A stretch of 64,000 bases of DNA from Obrimoposthia wandeli (Eukaryota): assembly GCA_977020255.1 (NCBI GenBank), contig CDROCS010002422.1:310001-374000 (forward strand), given 5' to 3'. This document shows positions 2,088 through 16,639 of the stretch, in pieces. The notes beneath the pieces are model-generated. The model had not been told where the DNA came from, made no database searches, and saw only the letters and a program-made list of their open reading frames with translations. A program made the position numbers and the translations under genes. How positions within the stretch are numbered: position 1 is the stretch's first letter; every line of letters begins with the position of its first letter.

Positions 2088-2121
2088 TTTTTATCCTGAA
2101 ACGGGATCAGGGACAGGACTA
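2085..2121 (+). repeat. 37-nt miniature derivative of the 163-nt hairpin repeat
   Basis: TAGTTTTTATCCTGAAA is identical to the first 17 nt of copy 2 (7825). It folds back on TCAGGGACAGGACTA. Confidence 0.6.
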
Positions 2122-2201
2122 AGAAAAAAGTTGTGGCCGAGTCATATAATTTTATACTGGATGAGAGTTGTTCATGCTTATAAGTGCCTGCACAGTGCAC
2201 A

Positions 2202-2348
2202 GGCTGTGTGAAAACTCCCAAAAGTATGCAAATTACACCTTTCTTATGTATGTTTTAAATTACCGGATTAACAAAATCAATAACTTAGATTGCACCTGTT
2301 TTCTTAGAAACGGGAAATTAACAGTTTGATCTGAGTTTTCACACAGTC
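2202..2348. mobile_element. 147-bp MITE with 16-bp terminal inverted repeats and 8-bp flanking direct repeat
   Basis: GGCTGTGTGAAAACTC (2202-2217) / GAGTTTTCACACAGTC (2333-2348), 15/16 match. AGTGCACA lies at 2194-2201 and 2349-2356. No ORF inside. Confidence 0.75.
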
Positions 2349-2412
2349 AGTGCACAAAGCGGACGTTTTTACTCTGAGCTATTCATAAAGGACAGTGAAT
2401 CACTGTGCCTAT

Positions 2413-2451
2413 AAAAAACCACGCTTTCATCGCCATTATAATGAAAGCGTG
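2413..2451 (-). terminator. Probable intrinsic terminator (minus strand)
   Basis: 11-bp stem CACGCTTTCAT/ATGAAAGCGTG preceded by an A6 run on the + strand. Confidence 0.45.
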
Positions 2452-2956
2452 TGAGCTGCTATATGCTAAAACTTAGGTTCCTGAAAAAACAAACATCTTA
2501 GCCAAATAAAAAGCACACGCTATTAGCTTCTATCGAACAGCCATCATATTCGCTCATTTATCTGAGCTATTCACGCGTTTCAGTAACTCAATTCAAACCT
2601 TTATTTTCGACTTTGCACATTACTGTCATTGACGTGATCTTTTTGGAGAGCTCTAGTCTATGAATATAGAGAAAATACTCTCTATACTTTCCACAAAACA
2701 ATCACAATTCGTAATGCTTCATGAGAAAATAAATGCGGTTTTTTTATTCAAACGAACACTGCTGAATGAGTTATATTTACAGGGATGAACACTTTGGGTT
2801 GTTTCGTTCACTACTCAAAAGTAGCCGCATCTCTATACCCTAAACTGTTTCATGCTAAGCAGTAATTGCTCAGAATAAATACTTAAAACCCCGTTTTCGC
2901 AAGGAATCGGGGTCATTTTTGTTATTGTGTGAAACAAAACTAATAGGATTTGTTTC

Positions 2957-3594
2957 ATGCCACGAATAGTCGAAGTAGCACCTGAAATGCGGCTTTATTC
3001 TGCTACAGGCGAACGCCTTTATCTTAATAAAGACGAACGCGCGAAATTCTTGCTCGCGGCTAACGATGAAAGTCCCGTCGACCGTATGTACTGCCAAGTT
3101 CTTCATGATACAGGCTGTCGACCTAGTGAAGCCCTCGCATTGTTTGCAGATCGTGTGACTTTCGACGGTTCAATCACATTCAGAACACTGAAAAAACGTA
3201 CCCATGATGGGCAAGGGCGAGTGAAGTTACCGCAGTATCGTACCGTTCCAGTTTCGCTGCGTCTTATTGAACATCTCGATTTAGTGTTTGGATTGCGCCT
3301 GCTTCATAAACAAAATGACTCGCTAGCAGCGCAGATGCCTTTTTGGTCAATGAGTAGAACCACCGCTTATCGATTGATTAAGCGGGTGATGGCTCGCGTA
3401 GGTATCAAAGGAAAGCAGGCGACTGCTAAAGGTCTGCGTCACGCTTTGGTGTCGCTATGATTACCGCTGCTAAGCCTGTGCCTATTCATTTGTTAGCAAA
3501 GGCTATGGGCCACTCATCAACAAAAACGACCGAGGTTTACTTGTCCGTGATCGGAGAAGAAGAACGAGGTATATTTCTGGGTGCATGGGAATGA
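2957..3594 (+). pseudogene. Small tyrosine recombinase (catalytic domain only, ~212 aa when repaired), 1-nt frameshift
   Basis: ORF 2957..3460 carries TGCRPSEAL and KGLRH. Adding one T to the TTT at 3445-3447 gives LRHAFGVAM...MGHSSTKTTEVYLSVIGEEERGIFLGAWE*, restoring the catalytic His and Tyr. Confidence 0.9.
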
Positions 3595-3675
3595 TAAGAT
3601 AAAAATACATAGTTGATTTAGTGGCTTATGAATTTAATTGATCATCAAATAAAATAACAAGGAGCGATATATAGA

Positions 3676-4103
3676 ATGGAATTATTATTAGGATCTGTAG
3701 TGGGTTCAGTTGTTGGATCACTTATTGGTTATATAGCCTCTCTAATTATTCAAGAGAGGAAATATAAATATGACTTAAGTATGGTTGCAATAGAACGGAA
3801 GCTGGATACCCATTAAAAGCATATACACTTTACTTTGAAATCATTAATTATCCCTCTGGTGATCCCTTAAAAATATATGAAAAGGGTGTGTTTTTCTTAA
3901 GAGAGAATAATTTATATCTAAATGAAAAATCGAGAAAGTCTCTTGAGTTCTGTTTGTCTCAGTTAGAGATATGCGTCAGCTTAAATGATAACCCTGCCCA
4001 ATTGTGTATTGAGTTAAAAAAAATGACAGGTAAAGGGGAAGAAATAAGAGAATCTCTGGGAATACCTGAAATTAAACTATCGTCAATAAATAAAAATTTA
4101 TAG
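3676..4103 (+). pseudogene. Array gene 1: N-terminally membrane-anchored hypothetical protein, frameshifted
   Basis: MELLLGSVVGSVVGSLIGYIASLIIQERK...KLDTH stops at 3814-3816. Another frame continues from 3816 as KAYTLYFEII... into ORF 3888..4103. Confidence 0.65.
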
Positions 4104-4144
4104 TTGTATTCAAATGTGATGAACCAAAGTTAAGGAAGCCATTT

Positions 4145-4420
4145 GTGAATAAAGATGATCTATTTATGTATCTGATATTAACGCCAGCGGCGCTCACTTT
4201 CCCATTAGTATCAATCTATCAAGTTTATACATACTTGAAAAATGGATTTTGGGTTTCAATATCAGCGTTAGATTTTTTAAAATATGTGAACCTACAATGG
4301 GCATCAAATCTGATGAACTGGTAAGGACTTACGGATGTATTGGATGTAGTTCCTATGAGTCTCTCGCCCATTATTTTTATAATTATTCCGTGTCTATTTA
4401 TTGTTTCAATCAATAGGTAG
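4145..4420 (+). pseudogene. Array gene 2: small membrane protein with in-frame stop
   Basis: GTG start after the repeat variant at 4120. MNKDDLFMYLILTP...WASNLMNW*GLTDVLDVVPMSL...INR*, with TAA at 4322-4324 in an otherwise open 91-codon frame. Confidence 0.6.
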
Positions 4421-4455
4421 GCCAAAGTAATGAATCAAAAAAGCAAGGAATTCGT

Positions 4456-4620
4456 ATGTTTCCGTGGAATGAATTATCGATTTTTGAGTTTGGTGTGCAT
4501 CTTATGCTCATTGGCTTATGGGTTACAGGGCTTCTGATATATCAAAAAGTATCTTATTTGGTCCGACTAAAAGAAATAGAGTTCAAAAGCCAAGGGGTTT
4601 TAAGTGACAGTGGCGAATGA
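4456..4620 (+). CDS. Array gene 3: 54-aa membrane protein
   Basis: ATG 6 nt after the repeat variant at 4431-4449. MFPWNELSIFEFGVHLMLIGLWVTGLLIYQKV..., one hydrophobic helix. Below the ORF track cut-off. Confidence 0.55.
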   Translation: MFPWNELSIFEFGVHLMLIGLWVTGLLIYQKVSYLVRLKEIEFKSQGVLSDSGE

Positions 4621-4661
4621 AGAAAAATAAATTACTTTAGTAGATATTAAGGAAAATATAG

Positions 4662-4823
4662 ATGACACATATGCAGCATAGGAATTTTGTTCTAAGTTAC
4701 GTTTGCTTGGGGCTTCTTATTATTATTGTTGCCGAAACTAACAATTGGATTGTTGTTATACCTTTGGTTGCTGGAGTGTATTTTTTAGATTCTGCTTTGC
4801 GTAAACATGTAAAAACTCGCTAA
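4662..4823 (+). CDS. Array gene 4: 53-aa membrane protein
   Basis: Preceded by AGATATTAAGGA. MTHMQHRNFVLSYVCLGLLIIIVAETNNWIVVIPLVAGVYFLDSALRKHVKTR*, two hydrophobic segments. Confidence 0.5.
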   Translation: MTHMQHRNFVLSYVCLGLLIIIVAETNNWIVVIPLVAGVYFLDSALRKHVKTR

Positions 4824-4854
4824 AAATTGAACCAAAATAACAAGGAGCGAATAA

Positions 4855-5391
4855 GTGATAACTGATTTTGAATTGCTAGCAAGTAACAATTTTCTAGTAC
4901 TGGATACTGAAACAACAGGGCTTGAAGGCGACGATCAAGTGATTGAAATAGCAATTATTGATAGTACCGATAAAACATTGATGAATGCTCGTTGTTGTCC
5001 AACCACTTCAATAAATGAATTCGCTCTAAATGTGCATGGTTTATCAATGTCGGTGTTAAAGAATGAACCCCAATTCCCAGCGCTATACGAAAGCTTAAAA
5101 GAAATACTGAAAAATAAAAAAGTGGTTATTTTTAATGCTAATTTTGATGTCCGGTTACTTATCCAAACCTGCAAAGCGTTTGATTTAGATTATGGATTTT
5201 TGGATGAAATTAAGTACATCGATGCAATGTATTTAGCCGCTAATGAATATGGAGCTACCAATAAATACGGTAGCATTTCACTTGAAAACGCTAGAAAAAA
5301 GGCAGGCATTGAATGGCGTGGCACTGCTCATACTGCATTAGCTGATTGTAAGTGTACGTTAGACGTTACTAATAAGATCGCAGGCTTGTGA
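4855..5391 (+). CDS. Array gene 5: DEDDh 3'-5' exonuclease (DnaQ-like)
   Basis: ExoI LDTETTG, ExoII FNANFD, ExoIII HTALAD. Confidence 0.9.
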   Translation: MITDFELLASNNFLVLDTETTGLEGDDQVIEIAIIDSTDKTLMNARCCPTTSINEFALNVHGLSMSVLKNEPQFPALYESLKEILKNKKVVIFNANFDVRLLIQTCKAFDLDYGFLDEIKYIDAMYLAANEYGATNKYGSISLENARKKAGIEWRGTAHTALADCKCTLDVTNKIAGL

Positions 5392-5439
5392 TCTACAAAG
5401 GCCAACAGTGAAACAAAATAACAAGGAAGCTTATTCATT

Positions 5440-5769
5440 ATGTTTAAATCATTTTTAATTCTAATTGTGTTCTTCAATTTTTCGATTACCAATATCAGTG
5501 CTAATGAAAATAAAACAGATAGTGGCGGGGCTGAAAATATAGGTTTAACACTATTAGCGACTGGAAAGCTTACTGGTGCTTGCGGAATTATGAAGCTACA
5601 ACTTGAATTCCAAGAAAATACTAAGCTTGATAATGGATACAAATTCATAGCCAGATTTTGGACAGCAGAAGCGGCTAGATTAGGGAAAACCCTAGAAAAG
5701 TATGCTGCTGACTGCGCTGTTACAGTGAATAATTATGATGACTTTTACACTAGGTTAGAGGCTCAATAA
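5440..5769 (+). CDS. Array gene 6: exported hypothetical protein
   Basis: Signal-peptide-like N-terminus ending ISA; follows the repeat at 5409-5427. Confidence 0.7.
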   Translation: MFKSFLILIVFFNFSITNISANENKTDSGGAENIGLTLLATGKLTGACGIMKLQLEFQENTKLDNGYKFIARFWTAEAARLGKTLEKYAADCAVTVNNYDDFYTRLEAQ

Positions 5770-5811
5770 ACTAATTTTTGCAACAAAATAACAAGGAGTG
5801 CGGCTCTAGGC

Positions 5812-5912
5812 TGTTTCGTTCACCGTTTTTAACGATGCCAAGACCTTGAAGCCTCTAACGATAACGTTTGAGGTTTTTCTTTGGCTTATATTACGTCATA
5901 GTGAACGAAACA
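5812..5912. mobile_element. 101-bp mini-element with 12-bp terminal inverted repeats
   Basis: TGTTTCGTTCAC (5812-5823) / GTGAACGAAACA (5901-5912); the same motif occurs at 2800. Confidence 0.55.
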
Positions 5913-6008
5913 CATCTTCCGTTCGCTATTCCACCCCTAACTTTACACAAAGTAATTAAAGCGTGTAAAGTTTAGTCAATTTTTTGTCAGTTTAGATCAA
6001 CCTAGCCA

Positions 6009-6443
6009 TTAGGTGATACTAAATAGAAAATCAGGTCTAATCTTGAAGCGGATACATAGCTTTTCTATCGCAGGCTTGGTCAATGGACGTACATTATTCA
6101 ACACACGGCTTACCATCGTCTTATCACCAATTTCTGGTAAGTCACTGCGGGTAAGGTTGTATTGACTCATCAGCACATTCAAAGTAGCTATATGAGCAGG
6201 AATGCCGTTAGCTTTGCTGATAAAATTCATTAAATCAATATCCCTTTCCTCATACCTATCTATGGAAGAAGCGATGATATCAATTAATGGATTTAAAGGT
6301 GCATTCTCCTCGTCTTCACTGGCATCAATAAGCTCACCTATAAATATTTGAGCTTTCTCATAATCATTTTCATTAGTAATGTTGATCAAAGATGAAAGCG
6401 GGCTAATAAAAACTTCGAATGCTTTAATTTCAGATTGATACAT
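6009..6443 (-). CDS. higA: HigA-type antitoxin (C-terminal HTH)
   Basis: NPLIDIIASSIDRYE and LTRSDLPEIGDKTMVSRVLNNVRPLT HTH; downstream of a higB-like gene. Confidence 0.85.
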   Translation of the reverse strand: MYQSEIKAFEVFISPLSSLINITNENDYEKAQIFIGELIDASEDEENAPLNPLIDIIASSIDRYEERDIDLMNFISKANGIPAHIATLNVLMSQYNLTRSDLPEIGDKTMVSRVLNNVRPLTKPAIEKLCIRFKIRPDFLFSIT

Positions 6444-6469
6444 TTTATTCCCCTTACAATACCTTTCGA

Positions 6470-6757
6470 TTATTTTCTATGTTTCGCGGTGAATTTATCA
6501 TAGTCAGCATGGGAGCCGACAAACTTAATATGCATAAGGCCATGAACGAATTGGATTGCGGCGACCATTCTTAAATTGTTACCGCCGACATCAACCACCC
6601 ACCATTTATCTTTATACTTAAAATTATCTAGACTTGGGAGCACTACTTTGAGTTCATCAGGGGTTCTAAATTTCTGTTTGTTCAATACAGAATAAAGGTT
6701 CTCTAAAGCTTTAGCGTCGTTGGGATATTTCTTTGCCGCATCATTGAACGGCGCGAA
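6470..6757 (-). pseudogene. higB: HigB-type toxin, 5' end damaged
   Basis: Frame is open from 6757 (FAPFNDAAKKYPND...WWVVDVGGNNLRMVAAIQF...HADYDK), but in-frame TAA at 6758-6760 leaves no ATG/GTG before TTG 6685. Confidence 0.75.
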
Positions 6758-6877
6758 TTATACCATTCTTAAATTGTTATCGCCAATATTATTCTGCTAC
6801 CACCCAAATCAGTCTACATATCAATGCTCAATCTGCCTAATGCCTTCCTGCTACTATGCCTCTAGCTGAAAACAACA

Positions 6878-7576
6878 TTAGCCGCGCGCAGCTGCCAACC
6901 AGTGAATAGCATCTACTAAATCAAATACAGGAAGCTGGAAGTGCTCACGCAGTGCCGCTTTATAAGGCGATAAATTAGTGCATTCTAATAACAAGCAACG
7001 TGGCTGATGCTGCATAAGCTGCTCAACCGCTTGAATAACATCACGCTGTGCAAGGTTTAAATCTAAATCAGCACGCCCTTCTTTTATAACGTGATGTAAT
7101 TCCTGACCATTTTCAATACCGGCTATTTTCAAGTTGCTATCAAAATGCCCATTAAAATGCGCTTCGTTTAATACTCTACTATCAAAAGTAACTACGCCAA
7201 TGGTGCATAACGGGCCAAACGCTTGGCGCAAAAATGGCAGCAACCCAAGTGAACTGGCAATAAAAGGAAGATCAATACTTTGCTGCACTTGTGCTTGTAC
7301 TTTGGCTAAAAAACCGCAGCTTGTAGTGATGATATTGGCCCCAGCTGCTTTTAAACTTAAACCACCTTCTATCACCTCCTGGATTAACTGCGGCGCAAGA
7401 TCTGCACAAACCACATTCGCTACATTCGCTTTACGCAATTTAAAAATCTGCGCAGGATATTGATAACTCGCCACATTGCCAATATCGCCTACTGGCCTAG
7501 CGAATTCGGTGTTAAGCATGATGATACCGATATGCGGCGCATTGTTTTGAGTTTCTGATGGCTGTGATGAGGGCAT
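6878..7576 (-). CDS. Aspartate/glutamate racemase-family protein
   Basis: Paired catalytic Cys motifs TSCGF and ECTNL; N-terminal FARPVGDIGN. Confidence 0.75.
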   Translation of the reverse strand: MPSSQPSETQNNAPHIGIIMLNTEFARPVGDIGNVASYQYPAQIFKLRKANVANVVCADLAPQLIQEVIEGGLSLKAAGANIITTSCGFLAKVQAQVQQSIDLPFIASSLGLLPFLRQAFGPLCTIGVVTFDSRVLNEAHFNGHFDSNLKIAGIENGQELHHVIKEGRADLDLNLAQRDVIQAVEQLMQHQPRCLLLECTNLSPYKAALREHFQLPVFDLVDAIHWLAAARG

Positions 7577-14044: not shown

Positions 14045-15527
14045 TTCCATGCAAGCGTTGAGCGAACACGCTATCACCAGTTTTGATATTGCGATTATCG
14101 GCGCAGGACCAGCCGGCATGATGGCTGCCATAACCGCCAGTGCAACAAGTGCGAAAATCGTCGTACTTAACGATAAGCCAAGTGTCGGCGGGCAAATTTA
14201 CCGCAATGTCGATCGCTCCCCTTTAGTTGACAGCTCAGTGCTGGGCAAAGATTATTTAGCAGGTGCGGATTTGGTCGCACAATTTAATCAATGCATTAAC
14301 GCTGAAAATAACAACCTACAAATATTTAACAATGCTAACGTTTGGCACATAGGTGATGACGGCGAACTACTGTTTTCATATGACGGCCAAAGTAATAGCA
14401 TTCAAGCCAAACAAGTGATCGTTGCAACCGGGGCGATGGAGCGTCCATTCCCTATTCCCGGTTGGCATTTACCTGGCGTTATGTCAGCAGGTAGTGCGCA
14501 AGTAATGCTTAAATCTGATGCGCTAGTCACTGATGATGCTGTTTTTGTTGGTAGCGGCCCGTTACTTTATCTTATTGTTGCGCAATATTTACGATTAGGC
14601 GTCACCGTAAAAGCGTTAATTGACACCACGCCTAAAGCTAATTACGTAAACGCAATGGGCAAAGCGCTCAACGCCTTTTCGCAACCCTCTATGCTGATAA
14701 AAGGCGTTGGATTACTCAATGAAATTCGCCGCAGCGGCACGCCCGTTTATCGTTTTGTCAGCGAGTTAAAAATTAGCGAAAGCGCACAAAAAGCAGACAG
14801 CATCCAATTTATCTGCAAAGGCAAGCAAGTAACCCTCCACAGCGATCAGTTCTTTCTACACCAAGGGGTTATCCCTAACTTAAATGCCACCCGCGCATTA
14901 GGCATAAAGCATCATTGGAACAAACAACAACTGTGCTGGCAGCCAACCCTTGATCAATGGGGCTGCAGCGATGTAGAACACATCAGTGTTGCAGGTGATA
15001 GCAGTGGTATTGTGGGCGCTGATGGCGCACGTTTAATGGGCCTAGTTGCAGCGCTAAACTGCCTACACAAATTAGCGCTAATCTCACAAGCTGAACGTAA
15101 CAACCAAGCGGCAAATTCACTGCGCCAACTCGCACAGCTAAATCGCTTTCGCTCCTTTATTGACCGCTTATATCAACCCCAAGCTGAGCATCGTATTCCA
15201 CGTGATGAAGTAACCGTTGTTTGTCGTTGTGAAGAGCAAAATGTACGACAGCTAAAATATGAGTTTGATCGTGGAGCAAAAGGCCCGAACGAACTTAAAA
15301 GTATGACACGTTGTGGCATGGGCCCTTGCCAAGGCCGCATGTGCGGTACTACCGTGAGTGAATTACTGGCTGATTGGCGCGAAGAGCCAGTTGGCGATGT
15401 AGGTTATTATCGCTTGCGCTCACCTATGCGCCTGTTGAGCTTAGTGGAATTAAGTAAATTTAATACATTAAGTGCACCGCCACCGCCATCTGAGGTAGTA
15501 CAAATTCACACAGGAAGCGAGCAATGA
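14037..15527 (+). CDS. FAD/NAD(P)-dependent oxidoreductase subunit with C-terminal BFD-like 2Fe-2S site (OoxA/HcnB-like)
   Basis: IIGAGPAG, VATGAMERP...PGW, VCRCEE and TRCGMGPCQGRMC. ORF track start is 13986; ATG 14037 overlaps the upstream gene end. Confidence 0.9.
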   Translation: MTNSMQALSEHAITSFDIAIIGAGPAGMMAAITASATSAKIVVLNDKPSVGGQIYRNVDRSPLVDSSVLGKDYLAGADLVAQFNQCINAENNNLQIFNNANVWHIGDDGELLFSYDGQSNSIQAKQVIVATGAMERPFPIPGWHLPGVMSAGSAQVMLKSDALVTDDAVFVGSGPLLYLIVAQYLRLGVTVKALIDTTPKANYVNAMGKALNAFSQPSMLIKGVGLLNEIRRSGTPVYRFVSELKISESAQKADSIQFICKGKQVTLHSDQFFLHQGVIPNLNATRALGIKHHWNKQQLCWQPTLDQWGCSDVEHISVAGDSSGIVGADGARLMGLVAALNCLHKLALISQAERNNQAANSLRQLAQLNRFRSFIDRLYQPQAEHRIPRDEVTVVCRCEEQNVRQLKYEFDRGAKGPNELKSMTRCGMGPCQGRMCGTTVSELLADWREEPVGDVGYYRLRSPMRLLSLVELSKFNTLSAPPPPSEVVQIHTGSEQ

Positions 15528-16639
15528 ACACTGATGTAGTCATTATTGGTGGCGGCATACAAGGCTGCGCCAGTGCATATTATTTAGCAAAATCCGGCGT
15601 AACGGTCACTGTATTGGAAAAAGACTGGGTCTCTCGCCACGCATCTGGTGTTAACGCCGGTGGAGTACGCTCGCTTGGTCGTCATATTAACGAAGTACCT
15701 TTAAGCTTAGCCTCTATCGAATTATGGCAAACGTTAAGTGATGAACTTAACACTGACACCGGTTTTCGTCGTAAAACACTGATCAACATTGCCGCGGATG
15801 AAGCAGATATGCAGACCCTGCGCGCACGCGAGCGAGAAATGCATGCACTCGGTTATCATCACGAACACATTTTAGATGAAAGAACACTACGCAAACACTT
15901 ACCGCACGTAGCCGGCCACTGTGTTGGCGGCGTATTATCCTACACAGATGGCTATGCCATACCGTATCAAACCACCACCGCATATAAGCGTGCAGCTGCA
16001 GCATTGGGCGTAAAATTCGTTGAAGGTGAAGCTGTGCAACAAATTCGTAAAGTGGGTAACACTTGGCTAATCGCCAGCGATAAGCATAAGTATCAAAGCC
16101 GCCACATTGTTAACTGCGCGGGTGCTTGGGCTGATAAAATCGCCGTGATGATTGGCGATAACGTACCTATGTCATACAGTGCACCGATGTTAATGATTAC
16201 TACCCGCTTACCGCATTTTGTAACCCCAGTAGTCGGCGCGGTTAGTAGGCCATTATCCATGAAGCAATTTGAAAACGGTACCGTCTTAATTGGTGGTGGC
16301 GCTAAAGGTTTTGCAGATCGTGAACAAAACCGTAGCCGCTTAGATTATAAAAAACTCTCTGTTGGTGCAGGTACCGCCGCTGAGTTTTTCCCGATGATGG
16401 CCAAAGCATCAGTTAATCGTATGTGGGCAGGTTTAGAAGCCTATATGCCTGATAACCTACCAGTTATTGGCCCAAGCCTAGCGGATGAAAGCGCCTTTCA
16501 CGCTTTTGGCTTTTCTGCACACGGCTTCCAAATGGGGCCGATAGTTGGAAAGATCATTAGCCAGCTAATTAGCGAGGGTAGCTCGACTTTTGATTTATCA
16601 CCCTTTAGAGTGGACCGCTTTGATCGCAAGGTGCTTTAA
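15524..16639 (+). CDS. FAD-dependent D-amino-acid-oxidase-family subunit (OoxB/HcnC-like)
   Basis: IIGGGIQG, ASGVNAGG, WAGLEAYMPDNLPVIG, GFSAHGFQMGP. Confidence 0.9.
   Translation: MNTDVVIIGGGIQGCASAYYLAKSGVTVTVLEKDWVSRHASGVNAGGVRSLGRHINEVPLSLASIELWQTLSDELNTDTGFRRKTLINIAADEADMQTLRAREREMHALGYHHEHILDERTLRKHLPHVAGHCVGGVLSYTDGYAIPYQTTTAYKRAAAALGVKFVEGEAVQQIRKVGNTWLIASDKHKYQSRHIVNCAGAWADKIAVMIGDNVPMSYSAPMLMITTRLPHFVTPVVGAVSRPLSMKQFENGTVLIGGGAKGFADREQNRSRLDYKKLSVGAGTAAEFFPMMAKASVNRMWAGLEAYMPDNLPVIGPSLADESAFHAFGFSAHGFQMGPIVGKIISQLISEGSSTFDLSPFRVDRFDRKVL

Follow-up and report, generated by a model that had tools for sequence, protein, structure and literature searches.

To our knowledge, no dedicated platform for the capture and expression of single promoterless genes is so far well established apart from integrons, whose mechanism relies on folded single-stranded attC sites and on a specialised integrase, IntI. 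Palindromic arm-8-arm core sites immediately upstream of the recombinase gene are known from Cre/loxP (13-8-13) and from TnpI/IRS of Tn4430. In the vpma/Xer1 and vsa/HvsR loci of Mycoplasma, paralogous lipoprotein genes present in both orientations are switched by inversion, and the shufflon recombinase Rci, a protein of ~384 aa with an extra C-terminal domain, acts on inverted sites. Rci of IncI plasmids is an invertase using asymmetric sfx sites, its shufflon varying pilV (PMC11852207, PMC5430464). The pdif/dif modules of Acinetobacter plasmids possess complete 11-6-11 sites in alternating orientation, which serve the host recombinases XerC/XerD (PMC6449649, PMC13141974). Here we describe a locus at positions 2826-5796 of a 64,000-nt stretch of DNA (hereafter the window) from the genome assembly of Obrimoposthia wandeli (GCA_977020255.1, contig CDROCS010002422.1). 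It rather likely is a recombinase-driven mobile cassette platform, integron-like in its working and built differently, and looks like a second, apparently undescribed integron-like gene-capture system. A full-text search of the literature retrieved no description of the recombinase family or of such arrays.

The first-pass annotation of the window had noticed a minimal tyrosine recombinase followed by small genes, each headed by a ~19-nt repeat, and had proposed that genes are captured at this repeat. Three points on which the proposal could have failed (a motif that is simply a generic ribosome-binding site, an array of fixed content, a recombinase family unconnected with such arrays) were examined directly, and it withstood all of them. 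As claimed, the 13-mer AAAATAACAAGGA is present exactly four times in the window (3651, 4834, 5415 and 5785), always on the + strand; 0.21 copies are expected from shuffled sequence, and none of 100 shuffles reached four. The other 61 kb of the window and a further 191 kb of the contig (252 kb together) contain no copy of it, and the 8-mer TAACAAGG has only five copies in these 252 kb, both strands counted. The motif is thus no generic ribosome-binding site of the surrounding bacterial DNA. The variants reported at 4120 and 4431 and a weaker one, the degenerate copy at ~4635, are also present, giving four exact and three variant copies. All of them are intergenic, lying after a stop codon and ahead of the next start; the final one (5779-5796) indeed has no gene following it. 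Recurrent short AT-rich motifs are not unusual in AT-rich DNA; nevertheless, the shuffling test, the empty 252 kb and the occurrence of comparable arrays in other lineages (see below) make it scarcely credible that the copies are due to chance, or are relics of duplication in an ordinary operon with copied intergenic regions. A count over the whole assembly was uninformative, as the 324 matches were fewer than those of the reversed-pattern control in this 1.35-Gb eukaryote assembly. Three apparent motif clusters elsewhere in it (L107-L109, contigs C180, C288 and C436) turned out to be coincidental, consisting of interspersed host repeats with 26-28% GC.

The key to the motif is found upstream of the recombinase gene, where two palindromic sites that had not been mentioned before are located, site 1 (2826-2852) and site 2 (2930-2957). 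Judged by its letters, the ~19-nt repeat is the half-site of the recombinase's own palindrome, i.e., the left arm of 10 nt plus the 8-nt centre. In the array this is the arm TGAAACAAAA with the centre TAACAAGG, and the right arm is not conserved; all array copies stand in the 10-8-10 register of site 2, with the left arm, an 8-nt centre ending in GG and then unrelated sequence. The same upstream arrangement characterises the recombinase family. A palindrome of the site 2 type is kept 27-49 nt ahead of the start codon in ~22 of 35 family loci, and most members possess the inverted repeat TGAA(A/T)CA-N14-TG(A/T)TTCA after a terminator-like hairpin. This hairpin with its T-run can be found at the corresponding position in nearly all family loci. 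In ~11 family loci, site 2 is preceded at a distance of ~95 nt by a site with N13 spacing, the counterpart of site 1. Its palindrome is perfect on two plasmids, one of Shewanella and one of Sedimenticola; in the window and in other chromosomal copies its outer arm is degenerate. The homology of the window to three related loci (L094, L096, L010) begins right after the left arm of site 1.

With its degenerate outer arm, site 1 resembles a recombined attL, all sites of the locus are direct repeats, and the platform is found in different genomic contexts. These features would also be in keeping with an array built up in tandem as one small circular element after another integrated at a single attachment site, comparable to IMEX elements or tycheposons. 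This recombinase or host Xer would have carried out the integrations, most elements would have decayed later, and no shuffling would be going on. We regard such an origin as improbable: the cassettes measure down to 200-600 nt and lack genes and full sites of their own, and the same cassette occurs at different array positions with different neighbours. Note that this explanation overlaps largely with a cassette platform, the difference lying mainly in the dynamics. A search for a second copy of the site 1 spacer, as expected for an attR, yielded none beyond chance.

Support for a cassette platform comes from metagenome contigs. The content of the array differs between samples, with the breakpoints at the repeat. 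The same cassettes recur beside other neighbours in contigs of at least three independent marine metagenome studies, and all homology breakpoints lie at the end of the 8-nt centre (directly after ...AAGG). In L094, a contig from a seawater metagenome, collinearity with the window begins at 2831, just within site 1, and extends to 3663, where the first half-site ends; a different gene follows. The exonuclease cassette (cassette 5) is ~96% identical in contigs of three other studies; its homology extends from 4828-4845 to 5420-5427, and its neighbours differ. Compared with two other contigs (L096, L098), L097 has an extra cassette of 503 nt, the junctions being ...TATTAAGG/ATTGGG and ...TTGTAAGG/TGTGAA. 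The sites flanking this indel match at 13 of 17 aligned positions and have no common run longer than 5 nt. Runs of this length do not suffice for homologous recombination, which argues for site-specific exchange. Furthermore, L096 and a contig of run X5 possess the left module of the platform including the arm and centre of site 2, followed by a 221-aa gene that replaces the recombinase, and site 2 is broken exactly after CTGATAGG in other contigs (including run X5). Crossover thus takes place at site 2 as well, and the recombinase gene acts like a cassette. A look-up of the 221-aa product of L096 gave no further contigs. Each variant junction is present in at least two independent runs, which makes assembly chimeras unlikely; the Logan contigs are, we assume, built from k-mers with k = 31, longer than the repeat. 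As flanking copies share so little sequence, the junctions fit site-specific exchange at the repeat.

Gene exchange at a 5' site could also serve as an expression switch, as at Mycoplasma vpma/Xer1 and vsa/HvsR, where recombination of a promoter-bearing site 2 with a half-site would swap the gene in the expressed position. Such a switch appears highly improbable here. All sites being direct, a switch would entail the loss of DNA, the recombinase gene included; the cassette proteins are mutually unrelated rather than paralogous surface antigens; and it is the content of the array, not only its order, that differs between genomes. These points outweigh in our view what speaks for it, namely a recombination site in the 5' leader of every gene, one full site heading the array, and a single contig of the likely source run that joins 2776 to 5939 on opposite strands.

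Relatives of the recombinase elsewhere have half-site arrays of their own, nearly unique in the respective genomes. In two Desulfobulbales genomes (L015, L019), the local arm plus centre, TTGAATCAAAAC, recurs on the + strand around the recombinase gene, and a HicAB-like cassette (94.6% identity) bounded by TTGAATCAAAAC occupies a different array position in each. Two Thiodiazotropha genomes (L017, L020) possess five and ~six copies, respectively, of TGAATCA(G/A)ATTAAGGG directly ahead of open reading frames (ORFs), and a cultured Pseudoalteromonas (sp. C2R02, L025) has five copies of a longer motif, which is a weaker match. In four genomes of 4.7-6.4 Mb, 3 of 5, 3 of 6, 6 of 7 and 3 of 5 of all copies in the genome are located at the recombinase locus, with 0-1 matches per strand for the reversed-pattern controls.

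These arrays also bear on the main rival explanation. It takes the motif for a signal common to the genes of a single mobile pool that serves translation initiation or regulation, either as an extended Shine-Dalgarno sequence or as the place where a translational regulator binds. Shuffling would then be due to homologous, microhomology-mediated or other recombination, and the recombinase would only integrate or resolve the whole element. Indeed, the motif carries AAGGAG 7-12 nt ahead of start codons, many family members are plasmid-borne or stand beside unrelated genes without an array, and the recombinase of the window is dead while the array is intact. However, a Shine-Dalgarno sequence is missing from the Desulfobulbales copies, and their distance to the next gene is as large as 140 nt; the earlier idea that the site doubles as a Shine-Dalgarno sequence thus applies to the gammaproteobacterial arrays and not to those of Desulfobulbales. 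What is conserved moreover matches the arm plus centre of the palindrome belonging to the recombinase itself, and the arm has A or T (TGAAACA vs TGAATCA) according to the lineage. The 5-nt runs shared by the sites of the L097 indel and the breakpoint within site 2 count against this explanation as well, and we consider it rather unlikely.

Several points nevertheless weigh against a cassette platform. Because the motif includes a Shine-Dalgarno sequence, translational selection contributes to its conservation in gammaproteobacteria. In the lineage of the window, site 2 and the array do not have the same centre (CTAATAGG vs TAACAAGG), and the cassette sites show no conservation where the right arm would be, which bears on the binding of a second recombinase monomer. 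The arm-to-AAGG distance in Thiodiazotropha is 3 nt shorter than in site 2, and the Pseudoalteromonas arm matches only partly. Arrays are present in only ~6 of the 35 family loci examined; on the many plasmids that carry a family member but no array, the pair of palindromes resembles an ordinary site of resolution or integration. The arrays were, besides, found by looking beside recombinase genes, an ascertainment bias that the genome-wide counts offset only in part. Finally, the recombinase of the window is a pseudogene, and the support for excision and insertion is wholly comparative.

Some observations on these relatives stand by themselves. In the Desulfobulbales arrays, gene-less segments of ~190 nt bounded by half-sites (L015:843-1035, L019:12763-13074) are filled with GATACCA/TGGTATC motifs oriented both ways, and could represent either structured elements or groups of accessory binding sites. 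Downstream of the recombinase gene of one Thiodiazotropha genome (L020:8725-10681 and 14441-15778), PADLOC lists as strong candidates HEC-01A/B (658 and 315 bits) and the KAP NTPase of PDC-S20 (318 bits). A half-site stands directly ahead of PDC-S20 only, and none precedes HEC-01A. Three iteron-like repeats of ~40 nt (CTCAATTTTGAG.TTTGCTTTAAAAACAA.AGTT.CA) are located downstream of a recombinase 82% identical to that of the window (L010:3400-3700), and neighbouring genes with ArdC-N and pRha domains suggest a plasmid or phage-like replicon. Repeated k-mers in L014, L016, L019 and L036 proved to be coding TPR or tandem repeats, unrelated to half-sites. Four recombinase copies or fragments in a genome of the Thiodiazotropha family (G375:C1:2566000-2600000; L130, L131) lie within segmental duplications of ~12.6 kb, and these large duplications rule the region out as arrays.

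The recombinase belongs to a large family. At least 322 clusters at 50% identity were found (E <= 1e-30). Members occur in gamma-, delta- and alphaproteobacteria, often on plasmids; the phage collection searched contained no relative. All relatives carry PF00589, and the intact ones have 190-215 aa. The protein of the window is 95% identical to the intact P0001, encoded on L094. No variation was found among 28 family members at R55, K79/K80, K158-x-x-R161-H162, H186 and Y195. In the window a 1-nt deletion at ~3443, directly after the LRH motif, splits the gene and moves the last His and the Tyr to another frame; its N-terminal piece matches PF00589 with 33.3 bits (cut-off 27.1) and its C-terminal piece corresponds to profile positions 144-167. 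The same deletion is present in contigs assembled independently from the likely source run (X11). Since the recombinase is frameshifted, the array is probably frozen here, and the window most likely shows such a frozen remnant. The source assembly (G000) contains only one recombinase copy, and a metagenome scan with P0001 detected only one locus, of 1.2 kb. The AlphaFold model reveals a single catalytic domain (pLDDT 85), in agreement with the earlier description of a catalytic-domain-only enzyme encoded upstream of the array on the same strand. Its nearest structures are XerH, XerA and IntI4 (Foldseek probability 1.0), which is also the value for isolated catalytic domains of the HP1, P2 and lambda integrases (TM by target 0.61-0.67). 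As only ~20 residues precede the catalytic domain, the enzyme possesses no core-binding domain.

The resemblance to integrons is considerable. In both cases a tyrosine recombinase of the Xer/IntI-like "simple" group is found beside a one-directional array of small, mostly promoterless and unrelated cassettes; the content varies between strains with breakpoints at the recombination site, and the platform occurs on plasmids and chromosomes. Toxin-antitoxin cassettes (here in L015 and L019) are also common to the two, as are candidate defence genes, here in or beside the L020 array. However, the enzyme described here would have 212 aa, lacks the IntI-specific insertion in the alignment as well as the core-binding domain, and scores far below the cut-offs of the integron-integrase models (NF011946, 14.5 bits vs 435; TIGR02249, 12.6 bits vs 265). 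Whereas attC sites are imperfect palindromes of 55-140 nt (R''-L''...L'-R'), the sites of the platform are 18-nt half-sites of the double-strand type. The reported lack of attC holds, for the intergenic spacers are only 30-70 nt long and contain no local inverted repeats and no RYYYAAC/GTTRRRY pair. The integrase gene of integrons is divergent, with attI between it and the array, whereas the recombinase gene of the platform is co-directional with the array and itself in cassette position. A Shine-Dalgarno sequence supplied by the site is a further difference.

Like pdif modules, the cassettes are small gene modules bounded by short core-type sites and shuffled between plasmids and chromosomes, but their sites are one-armed (10-8), all direct, unrelated to dif in sequence, and tied to a single small recombinase encoded by the element. 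The Rci shufflon shows that a tyrosine recombinase can act on many sites in which only one arm and the spacer are conserved; the sites studied here are, in contrast, direct (all on the + strand) and flank unrelated whole genes rather than 3' segments of one gene. With Cre/loxP and TnpI/IRS the platform has in common the arm-8-arm site at the start of the gene and a second set of motifs ~95 nt off, as in IRS, whereas those systems have no downstream half-site array and their enzymes possess a core-binding domain. As many family members are plasmid-borne, resolution or integration was probably the ancestral job of the family. The Mycoplasma loci also combine an Xer-like recombinase and a gene cluster with a recombination site in the 5' leader of each gene, but the genes of the platform are unrelated, co-directional, and gained or lost. 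The locus therefore has single features of integrons, pdif modules, shufflons and Mycoplasma switches, and lacks what defines each of them.

The window corresponds to positions 310001-374000 of a bacterial contig of 435 kb (40% GC) in an assembly of 6912 contigs, the remaining contigs being AT-rich eukaryotic DNA. The source of the contig is a marine gammaproteobacterium, a distant relative of the Osedax symbiont Rs2, i.e., this is a bacterial contig within a eukaryote assembly. Its IclR-type and racemase-like genes show ~70% DNA identity to the Rs2 counterparts, which are adjacent in Rs2; window ~2090-6880 is thus an insertion relative to Rs2. A search for the empty site in Rs2 did not recover the attachment site, as the intergenic DNA between the two genes is unrelated. 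The platform (~3 kb) occupies a variable intergenic region, and the array has 31-36% GC, compared with 42-48% for the recombinase gene and the flanks. Scans of the window for tRNA genes and Rfam families gave no matches, and so the platform is not a tRNA- or tmRNA-targeted island. The coordinates of all features are compiled in the table below. The description of the cassette genes as encoding small membrane peptides, a DEDDh exonuclease and a 109-aa protein with a signal-peptide-like N-terminus was borne out. The two ORFs of cassette 1 may be one broken gene; a protein 97% identical to the exonuclease of cassette 5 (P0121) is present in other arrays, and a database look-up of the 109-aa product of cassette 6 found no record elsewhere.

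Features of the cassette platform and its borders (positions refer to the window)
Feature	Positions	Strand	Remarks
Flank repeat copy 1, CTTTGGGTTGTTTCGTTCAC	2792..2811	+	just outside the left end of the platform; 17/20 identical to 5804-5823
Site 1, CGCATCT-N13-TGTTTCA, palindrome-type with degenerate left arm	2826..2852	+	left junction of the platform
Terminator-like hairpin (CCCCG...CGGGG) and T-run, between sites 1 and 2	2889..2921	+	read from the sequence; minus-strand version listed in scan
Site 2, TGAAACAAAA-CTAATAGG-ATTTGTTTCA, 10-8-10 palindrome	2930..2957	+	last base is the A of the recombinase ATG
Tyrosine recombinase pseudogene, 212 aa if intact	2957..3594	+	frames 2957-3460 and 3457-3594
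Half-site c1, TCAAATAAAA-TAACAAGG	3645..3662	+	homology to L094 ends at 3663
Cassette 1, 46-aa membrane peptide ORF (3676-3816) and 71-aa ORF (3888-4103)	3676..4103	+	no Pfam family
Half-site c2, variant TGAACCAAAG-TTAAGG	4120..4135	+	sequence register
Cassette 2, 59-aa ORF	4145..4324	+	ORF list
Half-site c3, TGAATCAAAA-AAGCAAGG	4431..4448	+	sequence register
Cassette 3, 54-aa membrane ORF	4456..4620	+	ORF list
Half-site c4, degenerate, only centre TATTAAGG retained	4635..4652	+	sequence register
Cassette 4, 53-aa membrane ORF	4662..4823	+	ORF list
Half-site c5, TGAACCAAAA-TAACAAGG	4828..4845	+	left homology breakpoint of the exonuclease cassette (runs X1, X5, X6; L096-L098)
Cassette 5, 178-aa DEDDh 3'-5' exonuclease	4855..5391	+	PF00929 74 bits; PADLOC DEDDh 92 bits
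Half-site c6, TGAAACAAAA-TAACAAGG	5409..5426	+	right homology breakpoint of the exonuclease cassette, at 5420-5427
Cassette 6, 109-aa ORF, N-terminus reads like a signal peptide	5440..5769	+	no Pfam or NCBIfam match
Terminal half-site c7, TGCAACAAAA-TAACAAGG	5779..5796	+	right end of the array
Flank repeat copy 2 (5804-5823) and imperfect ~100-nt hairpin (5812-5912)	5804..5912	+	hairpin arms TGTTTCGTTCAC / GTGAACGAAACA

The borders of the platform have peculiarities of their own. The 12-mer TGTTTCGTTCAC has three copies in the window, only at the platform flanks, and none in the further 191 kb of the contig; two of them form the hairpin that immediately follows the array (DNA fold -25.1 kcal/mol, z = -4.0). 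In another metagenome, the 36 nt at 2777-2812 are present alone in a different context. The joint of 2776 and 5939 mentioned above has a depth of 4.9 with 38 nt on the shorter side and may represent an inversion of the entire 3.16-kb segment. A long imperfect inverted repeat with 50-nt arms that are 72% complementary and 61 nt apart is located at 2195-2355, in the non-coding DNA that separates the IclR-type gene from the platform. Just right of the platform, within the same insert relative to Rs2, are ORFs of 144 and 71 aa (6009-6685, - strand), which read by eye like a HigA/HigB-type toxin-antitoxin pair; neither matches a Pfam or NCBIfam family.

The platform consists of the site 1 junction, the terminator, site 2 overlapping the start of the recombinase gene, and then six or seven co-directional cassettes. 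This anatomy, the relation of the motif to the palindrome, the cassette polymorphism with its breakpoints at the site and the association in other lineages are observed; catalysis by this enzyme, circular intermediates and the promoter are inferred. In the mechanism that we propose, a recombinase of the window type would bind the conserved arm, and strand exchange would occur where the centre meets the variable side. In this way cassettes, including the recombinase gene, would be inserted, excised and exchanged between arrays on plasmids and chromosomes, presumably through circular intermediates. The gammaproteobacterial centre ends in AAGG(A/G), and each inserted ORF would thus gain a Shine-Dalgarno sequence. 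Transcription would probably start at the left end of the platform, downstream of the terminator. A common promoter at site 2 is a speculation: the promoter scan called none there, and the hexamers read by eye (TTGTTA/TAATAG) are weak.

On the wider proposal our judgement is evenly balanced: a widespread family of catalytic-domain-only recombinases may drive a second, independent kind of integron, with an 18-nt double-stranded half-site in place of the folded attC, with the recombinase gene as a cassette that has the one full site at its start, and with a crossover region that in gammaproteobacteria is a Shine-Dalgarno sequence coupling capture and translation. This raises the question of how a tyrosine recombinase without a core-binding domain would recognise its sites and achieve synapsis with one conserved arm. 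A very small recombinase-site pair with a built-in ribosome-binding site would, if the proposal is true, be a possible tool for serial gene assembly. Marine symbionts, sulfate reducers and their plasmids would then hold an unexplored pool of cassettes, and the combination of a minimal recombinase and an 18-nt linear half-site would mean that gene-cassette capture evolved more than once.

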